Shown here piece by piece: positions 24,107 to 36,362 of a stretch of 64,000 nt of DNA (position 1 is its first letter; the number at the start of each line of letters is the position of its first letter). Below the pieces are notes generated by a model, which was not told the DNA's origin, made no database searches, and was given only the letters and a program-made list of their open reading frames with translations. This DNA is from Cyanophora paradoxa CCMP329 (lineage: Eukaryota; Plantae; Glaucophyta). The stretch spans positions 248,001-312,000 of the forward strand of contig QPMI01000610.1 in assembly GCA_004431415.1 (NCBI GenBank), in the 5' to 3' direction. The translations under genes were made by a program, and so were the position numbers.

Positions 24107-27100
24107 ATGTCGTTCGCCGCGCACCTCGATGTCGACCTCTACGACCAGAGCACAGAGGAGCTGCAGGCGAGGCTGCGCGAGCTCGAGATCCAGCGCTCCG
24201 CCGGACCCGGCTGGAACGCGTGCGCATGCCTCCCGCCTTAGCTAAGCGCCAGAGGCCGCATGTGCGTGTGCCGTGGGCGCCCTGCTAACGCCGGGGACGC
24301 TCGGGGCAGGTCGCTGGAGAAGCTGCGGCAGCTGATCATCGTGGAGCTGGAGGAGCGGCGGACGGGGGAGGACATCATTTTCGCTCTCGCGAGCACGTAC
24401 TCTACGCCGGCCGCCGTCCCGCTCATCGCCCAGCCCAGCGCCGCGGCCGCCGCCTTCAGCTTCCTCCCGCCCATCCCCGCCGCCTCGTCCGCGCGCTCCG
24501 CCTCGTCGGCCTCCGTGGAGCCGCCCCCGCCGCCGCAGCCGCAGGAGGAGCTGCGCCTGCCGCCCGTGCCGGGCGCGGCGGCGGCCGCGGCGGCGGCGCC
24601 GGAGCTCCCCGCGTACCGCGCCCCGACGGAGGACGACATCGACCGCATCCTCGCGCGCATGCAGAAGAAGGGGAAGAAGAAGGGGGCGGCGCCGCGCGCC
24701 AAGAAGAAGAAGGCCAAGAAGAAGGAGGAGGGGAGCGGGAGCGACTCCTCCTCGGGGGCCGAAGCCCCGCCGCCCCGCGCCGGCCCCGCCCACGCCGCCC
24801 CAGACGACCGCGCCTTCAGCGCCGCCACTTCTGCCGCCGCCGCCGCCACGCCCAAGCCCAAGGCTCCCGCCGCCGTCCCCGCCGCCCCCGGCCCGCCCCG
24901 GCGGCGCCCGCCCGGCCGCCCCGGCCGCCCGGCCGCCCCGGCCAAGCCGGTCGCCGCCCCGCCCCCGCCCCGCCACATCTGCTCCGGCTCTGGGCGCCGC
25001 GGCTGGACCCTCTTCCGCCGCTCCTGCAGGCAAGCCAGCTCCCGCCGCCGCCCCGCCAAGCCGGCGCCCGCCACCCTGCCGCCCTGCGCCGGCTGCTGCC
25101 GCACCCTCGCCTGCCCCGACCGCGCATCGTCTGCCTCGCCCCGTGGAGCCCCCCCGCGGCCCTCCCCGATCAGGCGCCTCGCGGGGGCCGAGGGGGCCCC
25201 TGCCCCGCAAGCCGTCCAGGGCCCTGCTCCCGAAGCTCCACCCCCAGGTCCCCCGCGGGGCCCGCGACGAGTTCCCCCGCCCTCCCTCGTCGGCCCCGGC
25301 GCCCGAGCCGGCGCCACCCCGCCTTGCGCCCCCCCGCCCTGCCCGCCCCGCGCCCCGCCTCCGCCTCCGCCCCTCCCTCCAATGCATCTCCGCCCGCCGA
25401 GCCCCCTCGGGCTGCCGCCCCCGTCCCGAAGCAGCTCGCTGCGCCCACCGCGCCTGCGCCCCTTCGGAGTCCTCCGCCGGCCCTCCTCCGACCCCTCCTC
25501 CCGCCCGCCCTCCGCCGCCGCAGCCAAGGCAGCTACACCACCGGCCGTGCCGGCCGAAGCCCGGCGCGCCTCGGCCCCCGCGGTGCCGGTGCCGCCGCTG
25601 CCGCCGGCGCCGGCTCCGCCGCCGGAGGAGGAGGGCCCGCCCTCGAGCGGGCGGGCGGCCATCGCGGCGTGGGAGGCGGTGCGCGCCGCGCAGGCCGCAC
25701 AGCCGGCCGCCGCCGCCGCCCGCGCATCGCCGTACCCGTCGTCGCGGCCCTCCCCCGCAGCACTCCGGTGGCGTCTCCGACTCCGAGGAGGAGGACGGCG
25801 ACGCACCCCCTCGGCCGCCCCCGCCGCGCCCAAGGCATCCGCTCTCCCGACCGCCACCGCCGCCGCCGCCGCACCGGCAGCGAAGGCCCCCCGCTCTGGC
25901 GCCACCGCGGCAGCCGCACGCACCCCCGACCCCCTCGACGACCTCTTCTCGCCCCTCGTCTCCGCCCCTGCAAAGGTGCGCGCGCCCCGCCGCCTCGCTT
26001 CTTCGCCCGAGCGGGGCCTCACGGCGGCGCGGCGCGCAGAGGGCGCCCCCCGCCGCGCCCCTCCCGACCCGCTTGACGACCTCTTCTCGCCCTTGTGTCC
26101 TCCAAGCCGCCCGCCGCCGCCCCCGCGCACCCTCCCGCGCCCGCGCCCCGCCCCCGCCTCCGCCCGAGGAGGACGAGGAGGTGGCGCAGTTCGTGGGCCC
26201 TCCACCCGCCCGGGGCCGGCCCCCGCGGTGTCGGCGGCGCCCCGGCCCCGCGCCCGCCCTCCGCCTCCCGCTCCGCCCCCTCCCGCGCCCCGAGTCGGCC
26301 CCCGCCGCCTCCAAGGAGTGAGCGAGTCGGCGCCACCCCACGCCCCTCGCCTCCCTCTGACGCGCCCCCAGGCGCCGCGCGGCGTCGCCGGCCGGCTCGG
26401 GCTCGGGCACGCCGCCGCTGCCGGCCGTGCCGGAGGATGGCGCGGTCGTCACGCCGCCGCCCGGCCCGCCGCCCTCCGCTGATCGCGACGGCCCCTCCGA
26501 CGACGACGACGAGCCGGCCGCCCCCGCCCCCGCCGCCCCCGCCGCCCCGCCCGCCCCGCGGCCCCGCAAGGCCCGCCCGCCCCGCGCCCCGCCCGCCAGC
26601 CCGTGCCCCCCGCCCCGTCGACTACACCCCCTACTATAAGGGCATCCACTCGGTCCGCGGAAAACCCGGCGTACCCCCGGGTGCCGCTCTGCTTACACGT
26701 ACCCCCGCCCCCCCGCAGATCTTCACGTGCTTCGCGGAGCGAGGGGATGCCCCCGAGACTCCGGACCTGCTCCAGGCCATGCAGGCCAGCCGCGCTCTGC
26801 CAGCTAGCGTACCCCCGCCCCGCACTCCCTCACGTACCCCCGCAGGAGCACCTGGAGCGGTGCGAGGCGGTGATCCCCGGGGTGCTCGCCTCGGAGAGCG
26901 CCCCGGACGGCCTCGTCTACCGCGTCGTCCAGAATAGGGAGGAAGTGTGCGTGCACTTTGGCGTACCCCTCCCGCCTTCCCTCCCCCGCCCCGCGTCACG
27001 TACCCTTCTCCGGCAGGTACGACATCGTGACGCGGGTGATGGACGACATGCCCGAGTGGGGCGAGCTGCACCCCGCCGCGCAGGCCCGGCCCGGCCCTCC

Positions 27101-28876
27101 CCGGCCCTCCCGGCCCCCCGCTTCCCTCCTCCTCACTCGCTCCTCCGGGGCGCAGGCGAACGGGTGGAACCTGCTGTGGACGTGGAGCCGCCCCCGCGTG
27201 AACGTCGCCGAGCTCCTCGTCTGGCAGAAGGCGCGCCCCCCCTCTGCAGGGCGCCGCGACCGAGGTCGAGCGGGAGGGAGGGGAGGGGCGGCCGCACGGG
27301 CCGTTGATAGATCGCCCGCCCGGCGGGGTCCTCCTGCTTGCCGATGCCACGGCGTCTCACCGCCGCCGGCGCGGCCCGACGCCGGCGCAGGTGAACCACT
27401 TCCCGCAGGCGAAGCAGCTGACCCGCAAGGTCCGCCCCGCCCCGCCCCGCGCGGCGAGCGAGGCCTGGGGTGACGCTGGGGCGGGGGTACAGGACCTGCT
27501 GAAGCGGAACGTGGGGCGCTACAAGAGCATCCCGGGCAAGGCGCGCCGCCCCCGGGGGCCCTCCCCTCCCCGCCCCGAGCCCCCAGCGCCGACCGGCCCG
27601 CCGGCGCGCAGATCGGGGAGGAGTTCGACATCGCGCCCGTCACTTTCAACCTGCCCCAGGCCCGCCCGCCCGCCCGCCCGCGGCCCCTCCGGAGCCCAGC
27701 TGAGGCGGGGCGGGCGCAGGAGTACGCGACCTTCGTCGACGAGTTCTCCAAGGCGCGCCCGCGCGCCCCGCTCGAAGAGAGGGCTATCCTCCGCTGAGGG
27801 CGGGGCCGGGGGCAGCACGCGGCGGCCGAGGGCGAGCACAACTTCTGGATCATGAAGCCCATCGGGCTCTCCCGCGGCCGCGGTCCGCCTCCCTCCCGTC
27901 CCGCCCCTCGCGCCCGGCCGCCCTCCATCTCAGGCCTGCGCGCAGGGATCTTCCTGTTCAACAGCATGGGGCAGGTGGCCTACGGCGAGAGCGTCGTCGT
28001 CCAGGCCCGCCCCGCCCCGCCCCGTCCCGCCCGCCCCGGCCCTCTCTGACGCCCCCGCAGAAGTACGTCGCCCGGCCGCTGCTGCTCGACGGGCGCAAGT
28101 TCGACCTCCGCCTCTACGTCCTCGTCACCCAGGCGCCTTCTTGTTGCTCTTCCTGCTCGCTTCACCCGATAGTGCCATCTCACGCATATCTAATCTGCCA
28201 TAACACGCTATGGCTGTAGCTAAGGCTGCGCCACCCGGGCCCCCGCCGGCGCGCCCCTCCTCCGGGGGCGGCCTCTGAGGCGCCTCTTGGGGGATCAGAC
28301 GGGCCCGCTGGAGGCGTTTCTGTACCGCGAGGGCTTCGGCCGCCTCTCCACCCGCCCCTACTCCACCGACCCCAAGCGTCCGCAGCCCCTCCCCGCCCCC
28401 TCCTCCCTCCCCCGGCCGTCCCGTGACGCCCTCCCTCCGCGGGGCCGCGCGCGCGCAGAGATCGCGAACCGGTTCATCCACCTGACGAACAGCTCGATCC
28501 AGAAGCACAGCGCGCAGGGGGGCGTGCCGCACGACCCCGGCATCGAGGGGGGCACGAAGTGCAGCCTGGGGTACCTCCGCCAGCGCCTCGCCGCCGCCGG
28601 CGTCGACGTCGACCTCCTCTGGCAGCGCATCACCGACGCGCGCACCCGCCCCCGGCCCCCCGGCCCCCCGGCCCTCCATCGCACCCCGACACGCCCCCGC
28701 CCCGCAGGTCATCCTCCGCTCCCTCTACTCCGTCCAGGTGCGGCGCCGGTTTGCGCCTCAGGTGCGGGTCCCCCGGGCTCACCCCGCGGGGCGGCGCAGG
28801 AGGCGATGCAGGCGCCGGGGAACGCGAACTCGTTCGAGCTCTTCGGCTACGACGTCCTCATCGACGCCAACGCGCG

Positions 28877-28913
<37 letters not shown>

Positions 28914-29685
28914 CCCCGCGCCCCACACGCACCCCTTAGACTGCGGTTACTCGATGTAGAGGGCGTTCCGCATTATTTGGCCCTTGCCGCTCCATCTTTC
29001 CCTGGCCTACACGCCGCTAGCCATAGCGCTGCCCTCTCGCGTGCCCCTTCCTGAGGCCCGCGCAGCTGAAGCCCTGGCTCATCGAGGTCAACTCCTCCCC
29101 TTCCCTCGCCGTCGAGAACCCCCTCGACGAGCAGGTACCCCCTCCCGCTCCGACGCGCGCCCCGTACCCCCGCTCAAGCCCCTCCCCCAGGTGAAGGTGG
29201 CGCTTGTGCGTGACGTCGTGCGCCTCGTCGCGCCCATACGCTACGACCGCGCCGCTCTCCAGGCTCGCCCGCGTACCCCCACCCCGAACCCACTCCGCTC
29301 CCCTCTTCTCTGAAAGCCTCGCAGGAGGTGCTCCGGCGGCGCCTCGCCGACCGCACGCGACAGCGCCCGAGCACCGCTGCCACCAACCGCGCGCCGCGTC
29401 CCGCCCCGCCCCTCCTTTCTTTCTCTGGGATGATCCGTACCCGCGCAGAGCTCAATGGGGACCTCTTCGCTGTGCTGCGGGGGGCGGTGCCGCGGGGGTA
29501 CGGCCAGCCGCCGTCCGAGCCGGGGAACTTCGCCATGATCGCCCCGTCACCAGCCTACTCCGCCATCTGCGCCCGGTCCGCCCCAAGCCAGGGATTTGGA
29601 CACCCCTTTGACGCCGCACGCCTGTGGCCGCAGATTCAAGAAGCCCGCCCCAGGGCCTCCCCCGACCCGTGCGGGGCGCGGCTAG
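24107..29685 (+). CDS. Tubulin-tyrosine-ligase-like (TTLL) enzyme, probable polyglutamylase, with long Pro/Ala-rich N-terminus
   Basis: QK|VNHFP...LTRK|DLL; WIMKPIGLSRGR|GIFL; VVQ|KYVARPLLLDGRKFDLRLYVLVT; EGFGRLS; IHLTNSSIQK; FELFGYDVLID; KPWLIEVNSSPSL. Confidence 0.93.
28877..28912 (+). repeat. Intronic poly(C) tract (about 35 nt); shorter ones near 10072, 20587 and 21159
   Basis: Direct homopolymer runs. Confidence 0.9.
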
Positions 29686-32661: not shown

Positions 32662-33758
32662 ATGTGTAAGGCCGATCGCATGATATCGCTCGCCGCGTGC
32701 GTCCTCCTGCCCCACTTTCATCCGAAACGCTAGCGCATCCAATGGAGAAGTTCAGAAAAGTGGAAGTTGCGCCATCTGTGCCGTGCTGAGGCGGTGCTTG
32801 TCGGGCCGGGCTGCGCAGGCTCCAGGCGCAGTTGTCGGAGATGCGTCAGGGACATGGCGCCGTCCTCGTCGCCGGAGGCAAGGTTCGTATGCCTGAAAAG
32901 CGCTAGGATTGTGTGGCCTGCATCTGCCATCGATGGGGGACACCGTCGCGCCGCCCGTCCACGAGGCCGGCCATTGCTGGCGGCTCAGTGCGGCTGAAAG
33001 CAGCGGCGGCGCCGGCGCAGGTGCTCGGGGTCGGGATGAACGAGAACCGGCACTCCCGCTCGGCGATGGCGGCCGGGATCTGCTCCATCCACGCCGAGGC
33101 GCGCCGTGTTTCTGTACGGGCTGTTCGTGAAGTTTGGGCTGAGGGTGGGAGCGCAGGTGAACGCCCTGTCGTGCTTTAAACCGGGGGTCACAATTGGGTC
33201 GTTCGCTGCGGAATATGCCTCCGGCGGTCAGCCCCGGCTCCGCGACGCAGCACCCACCTTTCCCTTGACGATTGGCGCAAGCAGACGCTGCCCAGACATC
33301 ACTATCTCTATGTCAGCTACAGGCGTAAATTGAAGAACTCTTGCCTTTACGTCGTACGGGTCCGGCCGGCCGCCGATGCCGCTCCGGGTGACTGCGCGCC
33401 CTGCTACGCGCTCTCGCGCCCCTGCGCGGACTGCCTCCGCGAGATGGCCGCGCGCGGCATACGGTGCGCCGCCGGCCGCGCCGCGCCGCGCCGCTGGCCG
33501 CCCCGCCGACGCGGGGGCAGCCGCGTGGTCTTCTCGACGGGGAGCGGCCTGCAGTGGGCCAGCGCAAAGGTCGCCGACCTCCTCCAGGACCCAAGCGTTC
33601 AGCCATCTCTCAGCACTGTAGCCTGCAGGTGGGCTCCGGCCCTGCGCGCCATCTTCGCTCGGGCCGTCTCACGATTGCGCAGAGATGAAAGGAATTCGAG
33701 GCGTCAGACCCGGGCTCGCCTTGCAAACGGCCCCCGTCCCAGCAAGCAGAAGGGCTGA
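32662..33758 (+). CDS. Zinc-dependent CMP/dCMP-deaminase-like protein, copy 1 (needs +1 frameshift or alternative donor)
   Basis: MCKADRMISLAA|LQAQLSEMRQGHGAVLVAGGK|VLGVGMNENR...CSIHAE|VNALSCF... then KLKNSCLYVVRV...LSRPCADCLREMAARGIR|RVVFSTG: HxE and PCxxC zinc ligands. Introns 32697-32818, 32883-33020, 33099-33156 (GC), 33227-33284. Confidence 0.85.
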
Positions 33759-34075
33759 CTCGCGGTGCTCACATATGCATGCTTTTCGCGCCTCGTTCGC
33801 TCACTGTCGCTGAGCGCCGCGCCCAGAGCCGGAACCGTACGACAAATTCAGCAATTACTGTAGACAGGAGTATTAGATATCGATCTTGCCAATGTTCTGG
33901 AATCCGAAACATAGGCTCGAATTCAATGATCTTGGAATCCGAATTACTCCACGCACGACCTCTGTTGCGCACCACCATGCACATGCCATGATGGCGACCG
34001 TGGCACAGTTCACGCCCATGCGCATGGGCAGTTATAAAATCTCTCATTTATTTAAGTTTCAAAACGTCGTCGGAT

Positions 34076-35168
34076 CTACGTTGCAGGAGGCTTAAGAAGC
34101 TCGGACCCGCCAGTCCTTCTGAGGCTCCGGGGCGGAATTCGATCTGTGGGGCCCCTCTTGGCAGGAGTCTTTAGCCTCATATCGGCCCTGCGGAAAAAGG
34201 CAAGTTGACATCCAGCACGATAGGGAAGCGACAAGGCACTGCGGCACCTGCAGAGAGCCGTCTGGTATGAAGAGCGGACGGACGGGTCCTGGAGGAGGTC
34301 GGCGACCTTTGCGCTGGCCCACTGCAGGCCGCTCCCCGTCGAGAAGACCACGCGGCTGCCCCCGCGTCGGCGGGGCGGCCAGCGGCGCGGCGCGGCGCGG
34401 CCGGCGGCGCACCGTATGCCGCGCGCGGCCATCTCGCGGAGGCAGTCCGCGCAGGGGCGCGAGAGCGCGTAACTCGGGCCCCCTGTGCCAGGCGGCTCCT
34501 GGCGGATCCGGACGACGTAGAGAGATGCGTTGCGCAGCTTACGCTTCGACTTGTTTGCCTGCCGAAGAGCACGGTGAGGCCAGCGCGAGACTGCCGGGGA
34601 GCGCGCTCGCACCTTTGAGCGCACATTGTTTGGATTCTTCGGAATCCAGTGTGAGGCCCGGTTCAAAGCACGACAGGGCGTTCACCTGCGCTCCCGCCCT
34701 CAGCCGTCCGAACATCGCGAACGGCCCGTAGAGAACACGGCGCGCCTCCGCGTGGATGGAGCAGACCCCGGCCGCCATCGCCGAGCGGGAGTAGCGGTCC
34801 TCGTTCATCCCGACACCAAGCACCTGCACCGCCGGTGCCGTCAGGCCTACAAATGGCCGGCCTCGCTGACGGGCGGCGCGACTGTGCCCGCCATCGATGG
34901 CAGATGCAGGCCACACAATCCTAGCACCGTTTAAGAATACGAACCTTGCCTCCGGCGACGAGGACGGCTCCATGGCTGTTGCGCATCTCCGACAACTGCG
35001 CCTGGAGCCTGCGCAGCCCGGCCCGACAAGACCGCGTCAGCATGGCACACTTGGAGGGCGCAACTTCCACTTTTCTGAACTTCTCCATTGGATGCGCTAG
35101 CGTTTCGGATGAAAGTGGGGTAGGAGGACGCACGCGGCGAGCGATATCATGCGATCGGCCTTACACAT
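34076..35168 (-). CDS. Zinc-dependent CMP/dCMP-deaminase-like protein, copy 2 (needs +1 frameshift or alternative donor)
   Basis: MCKADRMISLAA|LQAQLSEMRNSHGAVLVAGGK|VLGVGMNEDR...CSIHAE|VNALSCFEPG...CALK|GKQVEA* then in the +1 frame KLRNASLYVVRI...LSRPCADCLREMAARGIR|RVVFSTG. Confidence 0.85.
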
Positions 35169-35293: not shown

Positions 35294-36362
35294 ATGGGGC
35301 GCGGTGGCAAGGCACAGGCTGGGGCTGTAAAGGTCCAAACTCGGCTGCAGCTTCGCGTCAAGAAGCAGACAGCAAAAGAGCGTGCCAAGCAGAAGGCTGA
35401 CACGCGCTGGACGAAGCGCCCTCCTGTGAGCCCGAAGGCTCAAGCAATGCTGCGCGCATACAACCCGCCAGAGCCCGCGCCCCCGAACCCGAAGGTGTGC
35501 CCTGCTTGTACGCCTTCCCGCCTCTTTCGCGCGCTGAGGCTGGGGCGGTCTCGCGCAATCGCAGGAATTCCAGGTTCCGGAAGAGGAGCTCAAGCGAGCC
35601 GTCGAGCGCTCGCAAAGGTACACGCCGGTCAGGGCGACTACGGTCAAGCTGGAGGTCAACGCCTTTCCCGTCATAGCCCTAGCTGCCGCGGCCCAGCGGG
35701 CTGATCGAGCGTTGCGTGAGTCTAACTGGATGCATGCTCTGCAGAAATTCAAGACCGAGGACGGCCGGGGCACGGGTGTGCGGACCCTCGAGCGCATCAA
35801 GGCAGGACAGGTGCTCAACTCGCGCACCCGGCGCCACGGACGATCGGCTGATCGCTTCATGGCGCAGTTCGTTTGTGAGTACGCTGGAAAGAACATTACC
35901 GAGAAGGAGGGCAAGCAGCGGGAGCTCAAGTATGTTGCCGAGAACGCCCAGGACTGGTACTTCTACTACTACCAACTGGGAAGTCGGCGCATGTGGTGAG
36001 TGGATGGCGCGTGCTTTCGAGCTTCCGCCGTCACCCGCTCAACCTGTTCTTCCCCCGCAGCGTCGACGCGATGCGCGACGAGCGGGGAATCTTCGGGCCG
36101 CCGGGCTTCGGGCGGATCATCAACCACAGCCGGACGAAGCCCAACCTGTGCACGCGGTGCGCTTCCCTTTTCTTCGCCAGCGCCGCGGCGGTTCGAGGCC
36201 GAGCGCAGGGCGCTGATGGTCCCCGGCACGGGGGACAAGCCGGACATGCCGCGGCTCTTCCTCTTCGCCATCCGCGACATCGACGAGGGCGAGGAGCTCC
36301 TCTTCGACTACGGCGACCGCGACGGGAAGAGCGTGCAGAACAACCCGTGGCTTCTCCACTAG
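35294..36362 (+). CDS. SET-domain lysine methyltransferase, PR-Set7/SETD8 (KMT5A)-like
   Basis: GRGTGVRT...GQ|FVCEYAGKNI...RELKY...YFYYY...|VDA...GRIINHSRTKPNL...PRLFLFAIRDIDEGEELLFDYGDRDGKSVQNNPWLLH*. The DYGDR....PWL terminus without post-SET cysteines is the SETD8 pattern. Confidence 0.85.

Follow-up and report, generated by a model that had tools for sequence, protein, structure and literature searches.

Two reading frames for one zinc site

How is an active zinc-dependent deaminase made from a gene whose HxE motif is in one reading frame and whose PCxxC motif is in another? Two genes of this sort lie in the window, the whole 64,000-nucleotide stretch of Cyanophora paradoxa DNA analysed here, which has a GC content of about 70% and is rich in short introns (54–195 nt). 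They form a tail-to-tail inverted duplication and are about 88% identical across their first 600 nt, with the linker diverged. Each has at least five introns, at positions common to both copies. The intron after HAE (intron 3 in copy 1) is GC-AG in each, and GC donors are the majority in the neighbouring gene, where about 10 of 16 introns have them. A tract that is identical between the copies, with intron 5 included, points to recent gene conversion. The features are as follows.

32662 to 33758, plus strand: copy 1 gene, its N-terminal half being the published model tig00021348_g20584.t1 (P0155)
32662–32696, 32819–32882, 33021–33098 and 33157–33226, plus strand: copy 1 zero-frame exons 1–4, matching P0155 and encoding the HG motif, HAE and helix 2
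33172 to 33181, plus strand: copy 1 proposed +1 shift site, TGC TTT AAA C, with TTT (codon 66) in the P-site and AAA in the A-site
33227 to 33284, plus strand: copy 1 intron 4, 58 nt, GT-AG, phase 1 in the zero frame, used by P0155
33326 to 33328, plus strand: copy 1 zero-frame stop, TAA, giving a 96-aa product
33285 to 33463, plus strand: copy 1 exon 5, +1 frame, with the end of the linker, strand 3 (LYVVR) and the SRPCxxC helix
33521 to 33758, plus strand: copy 1 exon 6, +1 frame, with strands 4–5, the last helix and a variable tail
33405 to 33592 and 34284 to 34471: 188-nt tract identical between the copies
34076 to 35168, minus strand: copy 2 gene, its N-terminal half being the models tig00021348_g20587.t1 and.t2
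35168–35134, 35008–34945, 34823–34746 and 34685–34613 (or –34625), minus strand: copy 2 zero-frame exons 1–4, matching P0002 and P0151
34661 to 34670, minus strand: copy 2 proposed +1 shift site, TGC TTT GAA C, codons 65–67
34559 to 34624, minus strand: copy 2 intron 4, with annotated donors at 34624 (66 nt) and 34612 (54 nt), the frames being the same with either
34539 to 34541, minus strand: copy 2 zero-frame stop, TAA, giving an 89- or 85-aa product
34413 to 34558, minus strand: copy 2 exon 5, +1 frame, with LYVVR and SRPCxxC
34076 to 34355, minus strand: copy 2 exon 6, +1 frame, with strands 4–5, the last helix and a variable tail

The 3′ end of copy 1 is uncertain, there being a possible sixth intron from about 33629, and that of copy 2 is uncertain also.

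A sequence-only reading of this DNA had placed donors at 33227 (GTCAGC) and 34612 (GTGCGA), acceptors at 33284 and 34559, and a GCG-TAA at 33323–33328 and 34544–34539, and had put the second half, once spliced, into the +1 frame. All of these coordinates are correct, as is the frame relationship. The spliced zero-frame lengths that it gave, 96 and 89 codons, are those of the published g20584.t1 (96 aa, P0155) and g20587.t2 (89 aa, P0151). Copy 2 has a further model, g20587.t1 (85 aa, P0002), in which the donor is 34624, 12 nt farther upstream, and the TAA is the same. BRAKER1, with RNA-seq as evidence, produced the published Cyanophora models on a PacBio assembly that had been corrected with Illumina data (PMC6704402). 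Support for the introns and stops is from this annotation, not from reads; the deaminase genes are absent from the supplements of the genome paper.

Without splicing the offsets of the two copies are unequal, −1 in copy 1 and +1 in copy 2, so the shared +1 offset depends on intron 4, which in copy 1 sits within the dual-frame overlap. No stop interrupts the +1 frame between the second codon of exon 4 and the second half, across the spliced junction. Since this frame is open far upstream of the TAA, a shift is possible anywhere in some 25–35 codons, and GCG-TAA is simply the end of that overlap.

A donor matrix was built from 20 of the window's introns, one of them mis-set by 1 base; on it the out-of-frame donors present in the models give 7.1 (34624), 5.2 (34612) and 0.5 (33227). 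The in-frame alternatives raised earlier as a caveat do poorly: 33187 scores −5.7 and 34622 below −2, and neither is in the published models. Minor in-frame splicing could be permitted in copy 1 by a phase-2 GC donor at 33237 (score −0.1) with later AGs, and in copy 2 by a weak phase-0 GC donor at 34604 (score 2.9, 46-nt intron). A frame-restoring 22-nt intron in copy 2, 34612–34591, is unannotated and far under the window's 54–195 nt, and was rejected.

Breadth of the frame break

Two queries were used to look for homologs: the model of the uninterrupted paralog, P0001, and aligned N-terminal halves. Many of the proteins returned end shortly past HxE, and in the DNA that encodes them the second half follows in the +1 frame. 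The offset is +1 in all 22 distinct split loci with short linkers, and +2 in none. Random indels would yield +1 and +2 equally, and the uniform sign argues against them. The sequence-only reading had proposed a search for the offset in other eukaryotes and giant viruses; it recurs in other eukaryotes and in a giant-virus genome bin.

Split loci are present in an intronless contig (L002), in haptophyte contigs (L004, L008, L012–L027, L041 and L043, assigned by similarity to Scyphosphaera and Coccolithus proteins), in the amoebozoan Balamuthia mandrillaris (L010), in the basidiomycete Violaceomyces palustris (L011), in ascomycete-type loci (L009, L029, L040, L057, L074 and L075) and in a compact fungus-like contig (L180). 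They also occur in a giant-virus genome bin (L174) and a contig from a viral collection (L176), and there are several further loci. Five of the loci (L002, L004, L010, L174 and L180) have no room for an intron and have the same break. Most phage-like and giant-virus members of the family have a single uninterrupted frame, and the third Cyanophora paralog, P0001, which is known from its protein model alone, is uninterrupted too. Paralogs of the two copies are also annotated as tig00020801_g13880 and tig00000147_g9488.

Thirty-one NCBI fungal models bridge the break by introns at many different positions; these introns look like improvisation of the kind that predictors resort to. A phase-0 intron lies directly after HxE in both Cyanophora and the haptophyte L008, and its sharing hints at old vertical descent. 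In a tree of N-terminal halves (61 columns) the split loci cluster, with 10 changes against 22.7 when shuffled, at least two being forced. The base of this 61-column tree is unresolved, and it settles neither a single origin nor the direction of transfer between virus and host.

The second half has been kept. Every split locus retains an intact LYVxR and SxPCxxC. Among 11 haptophyte pairs dN/dS is 0.16–0.79 for the second half, and for the first half it is 0–0.39 in haptophyte pairs. The downstream half, for which a dN/dS analysis had been suggested earlier, is under purifying selection. Most loci lack an AUG between the site considered below and LYVxR, though a few have one, and in copy 2 there is none before PCxxC in the +1 frame. 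A CDA-fold fragment that has HxE and lacks both zinc cysteines cannot be active alone. The unshifted 85–96 aa product, having HxE and missing both cysteines, would therefore not be catalytic by itself.

A conserved codon pair in the overlap

What do the overlaps have in common? In 25 of 26 distinct overlaps there is an in-frame (T/C/G)TT followed by TTA or NAA, as against 1.7 expected from shuffles, and the looser NUU-NNA is found in 25 as against 9.2 expected, counts which carry no formal probability as the loci are related, about half being haptophytes. The pairs observed are NUU and then UUA, GAA, AAA or CAA; a narrower form of the motif had been set from the window and four loci before most of the others were seen, with CUU and CAA added later. 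The pair is nearly absent from the other two frames of the overlaps. The codon before it is usually for Cys, Trp, Arg or Tyr. It is present as well in 17 of 87 uninterrupted linkers, chiefly those of AT-rich viral relatives, and one split homolog, L178 (TCG TAT GAA AAA), is without it.

Some loci leave little latitude. In Balamuthia the overlap is 7 codons, the +1 frame opens five codons ahead of the TTT, and TGC TTT AAA TGA closes the zero frame. In several haptophytes and the giant-virus bin the zero frame closes with GTT or CTT, then TTA, then TGA. The stop directly after the pair in Balamuthia and the haptophytes pins the position of the site. Across the loci the zero-frame stop is from 2 to more than 100 codons past it.

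The TGC TTT AAA of copy 1 is found, as the identical nine bases, in Balamuthia and in the fungus-like L180, and Violaceomyces has TGT TTT AAA CCG. The TGC TTT GAA of copy 2 is also that of the fungal L009, and TTT GAA is present in nine of nine ascomycete-type loci examined; in ascomycetes the conserved peptide is in the zero frame before TTT GAA and in the +1 frame after it. Within the 64 kb the Cyanophora 10-mers TGC TTT AAA C and TGC TTT GAA C are the sole matches (0.08 expected), and both are upstream of intron 4. The site codons are rare in Cyanophora, where GC3 is 0.93: TTT is used 1 time in 19, AAA 0 in 65 and GAA 8 in 76. TTA is used 0 times in 29 in a haptophyte neighbour gene. In AT-rich hosts the site codons are not rare.

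Over the remainder of exon 4 in copy 1, codon preference favours the zero frame (0.39 versus 0.19), so that the placing of the Cyanophora site rests on homology. No stable conserved 3′ structure was found in 12 homologs (z −1.1 to 1.4). Transcriptome-derived peptides from two haptophytes contain GFYE, which is what the intact site, all four U included, encodes in the +1 frame.

Explanations other than a shift at the codon pair

The sequence-only reading had envisaged an antizyme-like shift at the stop, and in Cyanophora a shift at GCG-UAA, alone or besides the upstream site, would use a position at which the +1 frame is open. GCG-TAA is also kept in both copies though the CGT that it requires is rare (4 of 68 Arg codons), and codon use in exon 4 of copy 1 does not favour +1. 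However, GCG-TAA is the other-frame reading of Arg-Lys in a conserved R-K-L, and the copies are recent paralogs with gene conversion that would share sequence anyway. The family site is intact upstream in both. As a family-wide site GCG-TAA fails: GCG precedes the zero-frame stop in none of 22 homologs, ten different codons are found there, and the position of the stop varies. Further, GCG is the commonest Ala codon in the Cyanophora genome (109 of 208), unlike in yeast, where GCG shifting depends on a missing tRNA. A shift at this stop is quite improbable. Of the recoding claim, the need for a selected +1 event that links HAE with PCxxC is supported, and an antizyme-like shift at GCG-TAA is not. 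The earlier observation is real and reaches more widely than it supposed; the site itself is probably UUU-(G/A)AA, upstream, instead of the stop. Regulated or minor alternative splicing, through the weak GC donors in Cyanophora or a 40-nt intron in ascomycetes, deserves very little credence as the means by which the frame is restored. GC donors are common in the Cyanophora genome, to judge by the neighbouring gene, weak in-frame options do exist there, and NCBI fungal models span the break by an intron. The splice switch offered earlier founders as a general mechanism, however, on intronless homologs with the same break, among them the five loci without space for an intron. The fungal models cross the break at too many differing places, and a real 40-nt intron across the ascomycete site was rejected, as its acceptor is missing in L029 and L074. 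The Violaceomyces counterpart of that intron is placed elsewhere.

Could the frame be corrected in RNA, through loss of one U from the U run, whether edited out or skipped by a slipping polymerase, or could ribosomes shift by −2? All sites do have three or four U, and the haptophyte G-GUU-UUA is similar to the −2 site of arteriviruses. Runs of three to four U are short for polymerase slippage, though, and a −2 shift would give no A-site re-pairing at UUU-AAA or UUU-GAA. The haptophyte peptides imply that the assembled mRNA retains all four U; they are presumably the output of a frame-correcting predictor, and being frame-corrected in that way they argue against editing or splicing in the bulk mRNA. 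Little weight is given to these possibilities. Hardest to credit is that the loci are pseudogenes, that assemblies have indels, or that two half-proteins are made separately, although homopolymer runs in the window are typical of long-read assemblies and a few loci have an AUG before LYVxR. The same +1 sign and motif recur across unrelated assemblies and many lineages, dN/dS is below 1 in both halves, and in most loci, copy 2 among them, the +1 frame offers no AUG ahead of PCxxC. The recurrence of one +1 offset in several supergroups of eukaryotes, together with the purifying selection on the second half, refutes the caveats of an assembly error and of a pseudogenisation shared by the two copies.

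A probable shift by P-site slippage

The preferred reading, to which considerable confidence attaches, is programmed +1 ribosomal frameshifting at the NUU-(UUA/GAA/AAA/CAA) pair, by which the zinc site would be completed. Ribosomes would read HxE and helix 2 in the zero frame and then arrive with NUU in the P-site (UUU in Cyanophora, fungi and Balamuthia, and GUU or CUU in haptophytes and others) and an A-ending codon, AAA, GAA, CAA or UUA, in an A-site that fills slowly. During the slow filling the peptidyl-tRNA would slip by one base, from NUU to UUN, the re-pairing at UUN being deduced from codon rules. Decoding in the +1 frame would then proceed through the variable linker into strand 3 and PCxxC. 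Ribosomes that do not shift would soon stop, and a fragment of 85–96 aa with HxE only would be released. In the predicted structure of P0001 (pLDDT 85) the site is just past helix 2, in a low-confidence loop before strand 3, and on this model a variable junction is tolerated there.

There is precedent for P-site slippage by +1 in yeast Ty1, ABP140 and EST3 (PMC5009743), and for a +1 shift at UUU in PA-X and PLEKHM2, where a 3′ structure is not required (PMC11451614). Like such cases of +1 P-site-slippage shifting, the deaminase genes have overlapping frames whose fusion would be the functional protein, and conservation across species, and a P-site codon that can re-pair at +1 is in frame in 25 of the 26 overlaps. 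We infer that ribosomes do the shifting, and the same holds for the precise codon, for efficiency and possible regulation, and for the substrate.

In wild-type yeast the rate of shifting at a bare CUU-AAA-C is about 0.2%, and it is ten times as high when tRNAs lack the U34 side chain (PMC4627075), so the efficiency here may be low or conditional. A likely purpose of the arrangement would be to keep active deaminase low or conditional; the sequence-only reading had likewise suggested that regulated recoding might restrain a harmful activity. AAA, GAA, CAA and UUA are read by tRNAs modified at wobble U34, and CUU and GUU by tRNAs with inosine at position 34. The dependence of all four A-site codons on U34 tRNAs is a lead. 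One could imagine, though it is doubtful, that the frameshift is a sensor dating from early eukaryotes, with tRNA hypomodification, tRNA depletion or infection turning the deaminase on. If so, it would be a second regulatory circuit on the scale of that of antizyme, common to some giant viruses, and what it releases might be a defence enzyme that edits nucleic acids or depletes nucleotides.

Identity of the enzyme

The family is a zinc-dependent CDA-fold deaminase family, an uncharacterised subfamily of PF00383 (phrog_174). P0001 scores above the cut-off for PF00383, has HxE on helix 2 and PCxxC on helix 3 of a five-stranded core in its predicted fold, and has matches among dCMP and cytidine deaminases. 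When exons of the window were scanned one by one against Pfam, none gave a deaminase match. Exons and published proteins entered the searches, the folding and the tree separately. Three of the four features of canonical dCMP deaminases and ComE that were tested (PMC3239186 Table 1) are lacking. After strand 2 there is NEDR or NENR and then the LYVVR of strand 3, and the canonical dCMP/ComE insert (PMC3239186 Table 1) is absent. The NA motif that follows HxE in dCMP deaminases and ComE (PMC3239186) is there as HAEVNA in both copies, and is lost in most homologs.

The nearest matches in sequence and in fold are CMP/dCMP-type deaminase-domain proteins of giant viruses and phages. The layout of HG, HAE, LYVVR and SxPCxxC is the same in Pyramimonas orientalis virus A0A7M3UNY8 and in FirrV-1-A29. 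These viral and phage kin are uncharacterised and, unlike the split genes, mostly have one uninterrupted frame and a short linker. Some phage PF00383 proteins are 5mC-selective deaminases of single-stranded DNA, a polyphyletic trait (bioRxiv 2024.12.05.627091). The best guess for the substrate is a cytosine nucleotide or nucleic acid.

Comparison with known frameshifting

Searches of the open literature returned no earlier description of a frameshift in this deaminase family. The mechanism is already known in kind; the gene family and the set of shift sites were not found in the open literature searched. To our knowledge antizyme is the sole nuclear-gene frameshift of comparable breadth. If the preferred reading is true, shifting at the codon pair would be a second case of that breadth, extending over glaucophytes, haptophytes, an amoebozoan and fungi, where very few conserved frameshifts in nuclear genes are known (PMC11451614), and would bring a new family of shift sites and a frameshift that splits the metal site of an enzyme. 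It accounts for mis-annotation in public databases, with truncated models in Cyanophora and Balamuthia and invented introns in fungi, and offers a readily testable way into an uncharacterised deaminase of which cells seem to limit the amount.

Yeast Ty1, ABP140 (TRM140) and EST3 shift at CUU-AGG-C and CUU-AGU-U. They are confined to budding yeasts, some 150 My, and are tied to the tRNA set of these organisms. The deaminase genes, in contrast, have UUA, GAA, AAA or CAA in the A-site and a P-site codon that varies between UUU, CUU and GUU, and their break is found across several supergroups of eukaryotes and in some viruses. Influenza PA-X and vertebrate PLEKHM2 (UCC-UUU-CGN) also have UUU in the P-site, the Cyanophora context being UCG-UGC-UUU. 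However, their tRNA gains a perfect pair at UUC, whereas the +1 codon of the deaminase genes is mostly UUA, UUG or UUU; and their shift yields a minor alternative C-terminus, whereas that of the deaminase genes would be needed for the catalytic domain.

Another deaminase gene with a frameshift is Bacillus cdd, for cytidine deaminase. There the shift is at A-CGA-AAG and is −1, incidental and productive of a C-terminal extension only, and the family is a different one. Ornithine decarboxylase antizyme is likewise a cellular gene with a +1 shift for the active product and with very deep conservation. In antizyme, at GCG-UGA in budding yeast, the A-site is occupied by a stop codon, and the shift responds to polyamines; the conserved element of the deaminase genes is a pair of sense codons.

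Deaminase genes and their neighbourhood

Two features lie beside the tail-to-tail deaminase genes (copy 1, 32662..33758, +; copy 2, 34076..35168, −):

26700-29400, +, tubulin-tyrosine-ligase-like gene, recognised by eye
35700-36360, +, SET-domain gene (PF00856), adjoining copy 2

Roughly 10 of the 16 introns in the tubulin-tyrosine-ligase-like gene belong to the GC-AG class, and for some of these the exon does not end in AG; in C. paradoxa a GC donor seems to be the usual case. A long C homopolymer, whose length may be an assembly artefact, lies within an intron at 28870-28912.

The inverted deaminase pair shows signs of patchy gene conversion: 188 nt are identical between 33405-33592 and 34284-34471, intron included, and the adjoining linker is highly divergent. 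After the last helix CTGCAG-GT occurs at the homologous place in both copies (33629 onward, +; 34247 downward, −), where it probably marks a sixth intron, and because of this the C-terminal tails of both are uncertain. One haptophyte homolog has an intron right after the HxE codon (L008:1-100), which matches intron 3 of the Cyanophora copies in position and phase.

Uninterrupted models exist for two more C. paradoxa paralogs, P0001 (tig00020801_g13880) and P0015 (tig00000147_g9488). Since P0001 has SCFG at the position of the proposed shift site and P0015 lacks the entire linker, the break may be hidden behind predicted introns in both genes.

Split homologs elsewhere

Most viral homologs have an uninterrupted frame, unlike a giant-virus genome bin (L174:1170-1201) and a 1.47-Mb contig from a viral collection (L176:1133-1180), both of which are split with CTT TTA as the proposed +1 shift motif. 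The sole split homolog without the motif is L178 (2163-2228), a near relative of the unassigned locus L002, in which TCG TAT GAA AAA replaces the TGG TTT GAA AAA of L002.

Many ascomycete genes have up to three in-frame motif copies within the overlap (L009:1420-1435, L029, L074), namely TGY TTT AAA in KPCFKL, GTT CAA in QVQE and TTT GAA in RFE. Such copies may act as shift sites in tandem, and a nascent-chain signal could reside in the zero-frame peptide that the ascomycete genes conserve.
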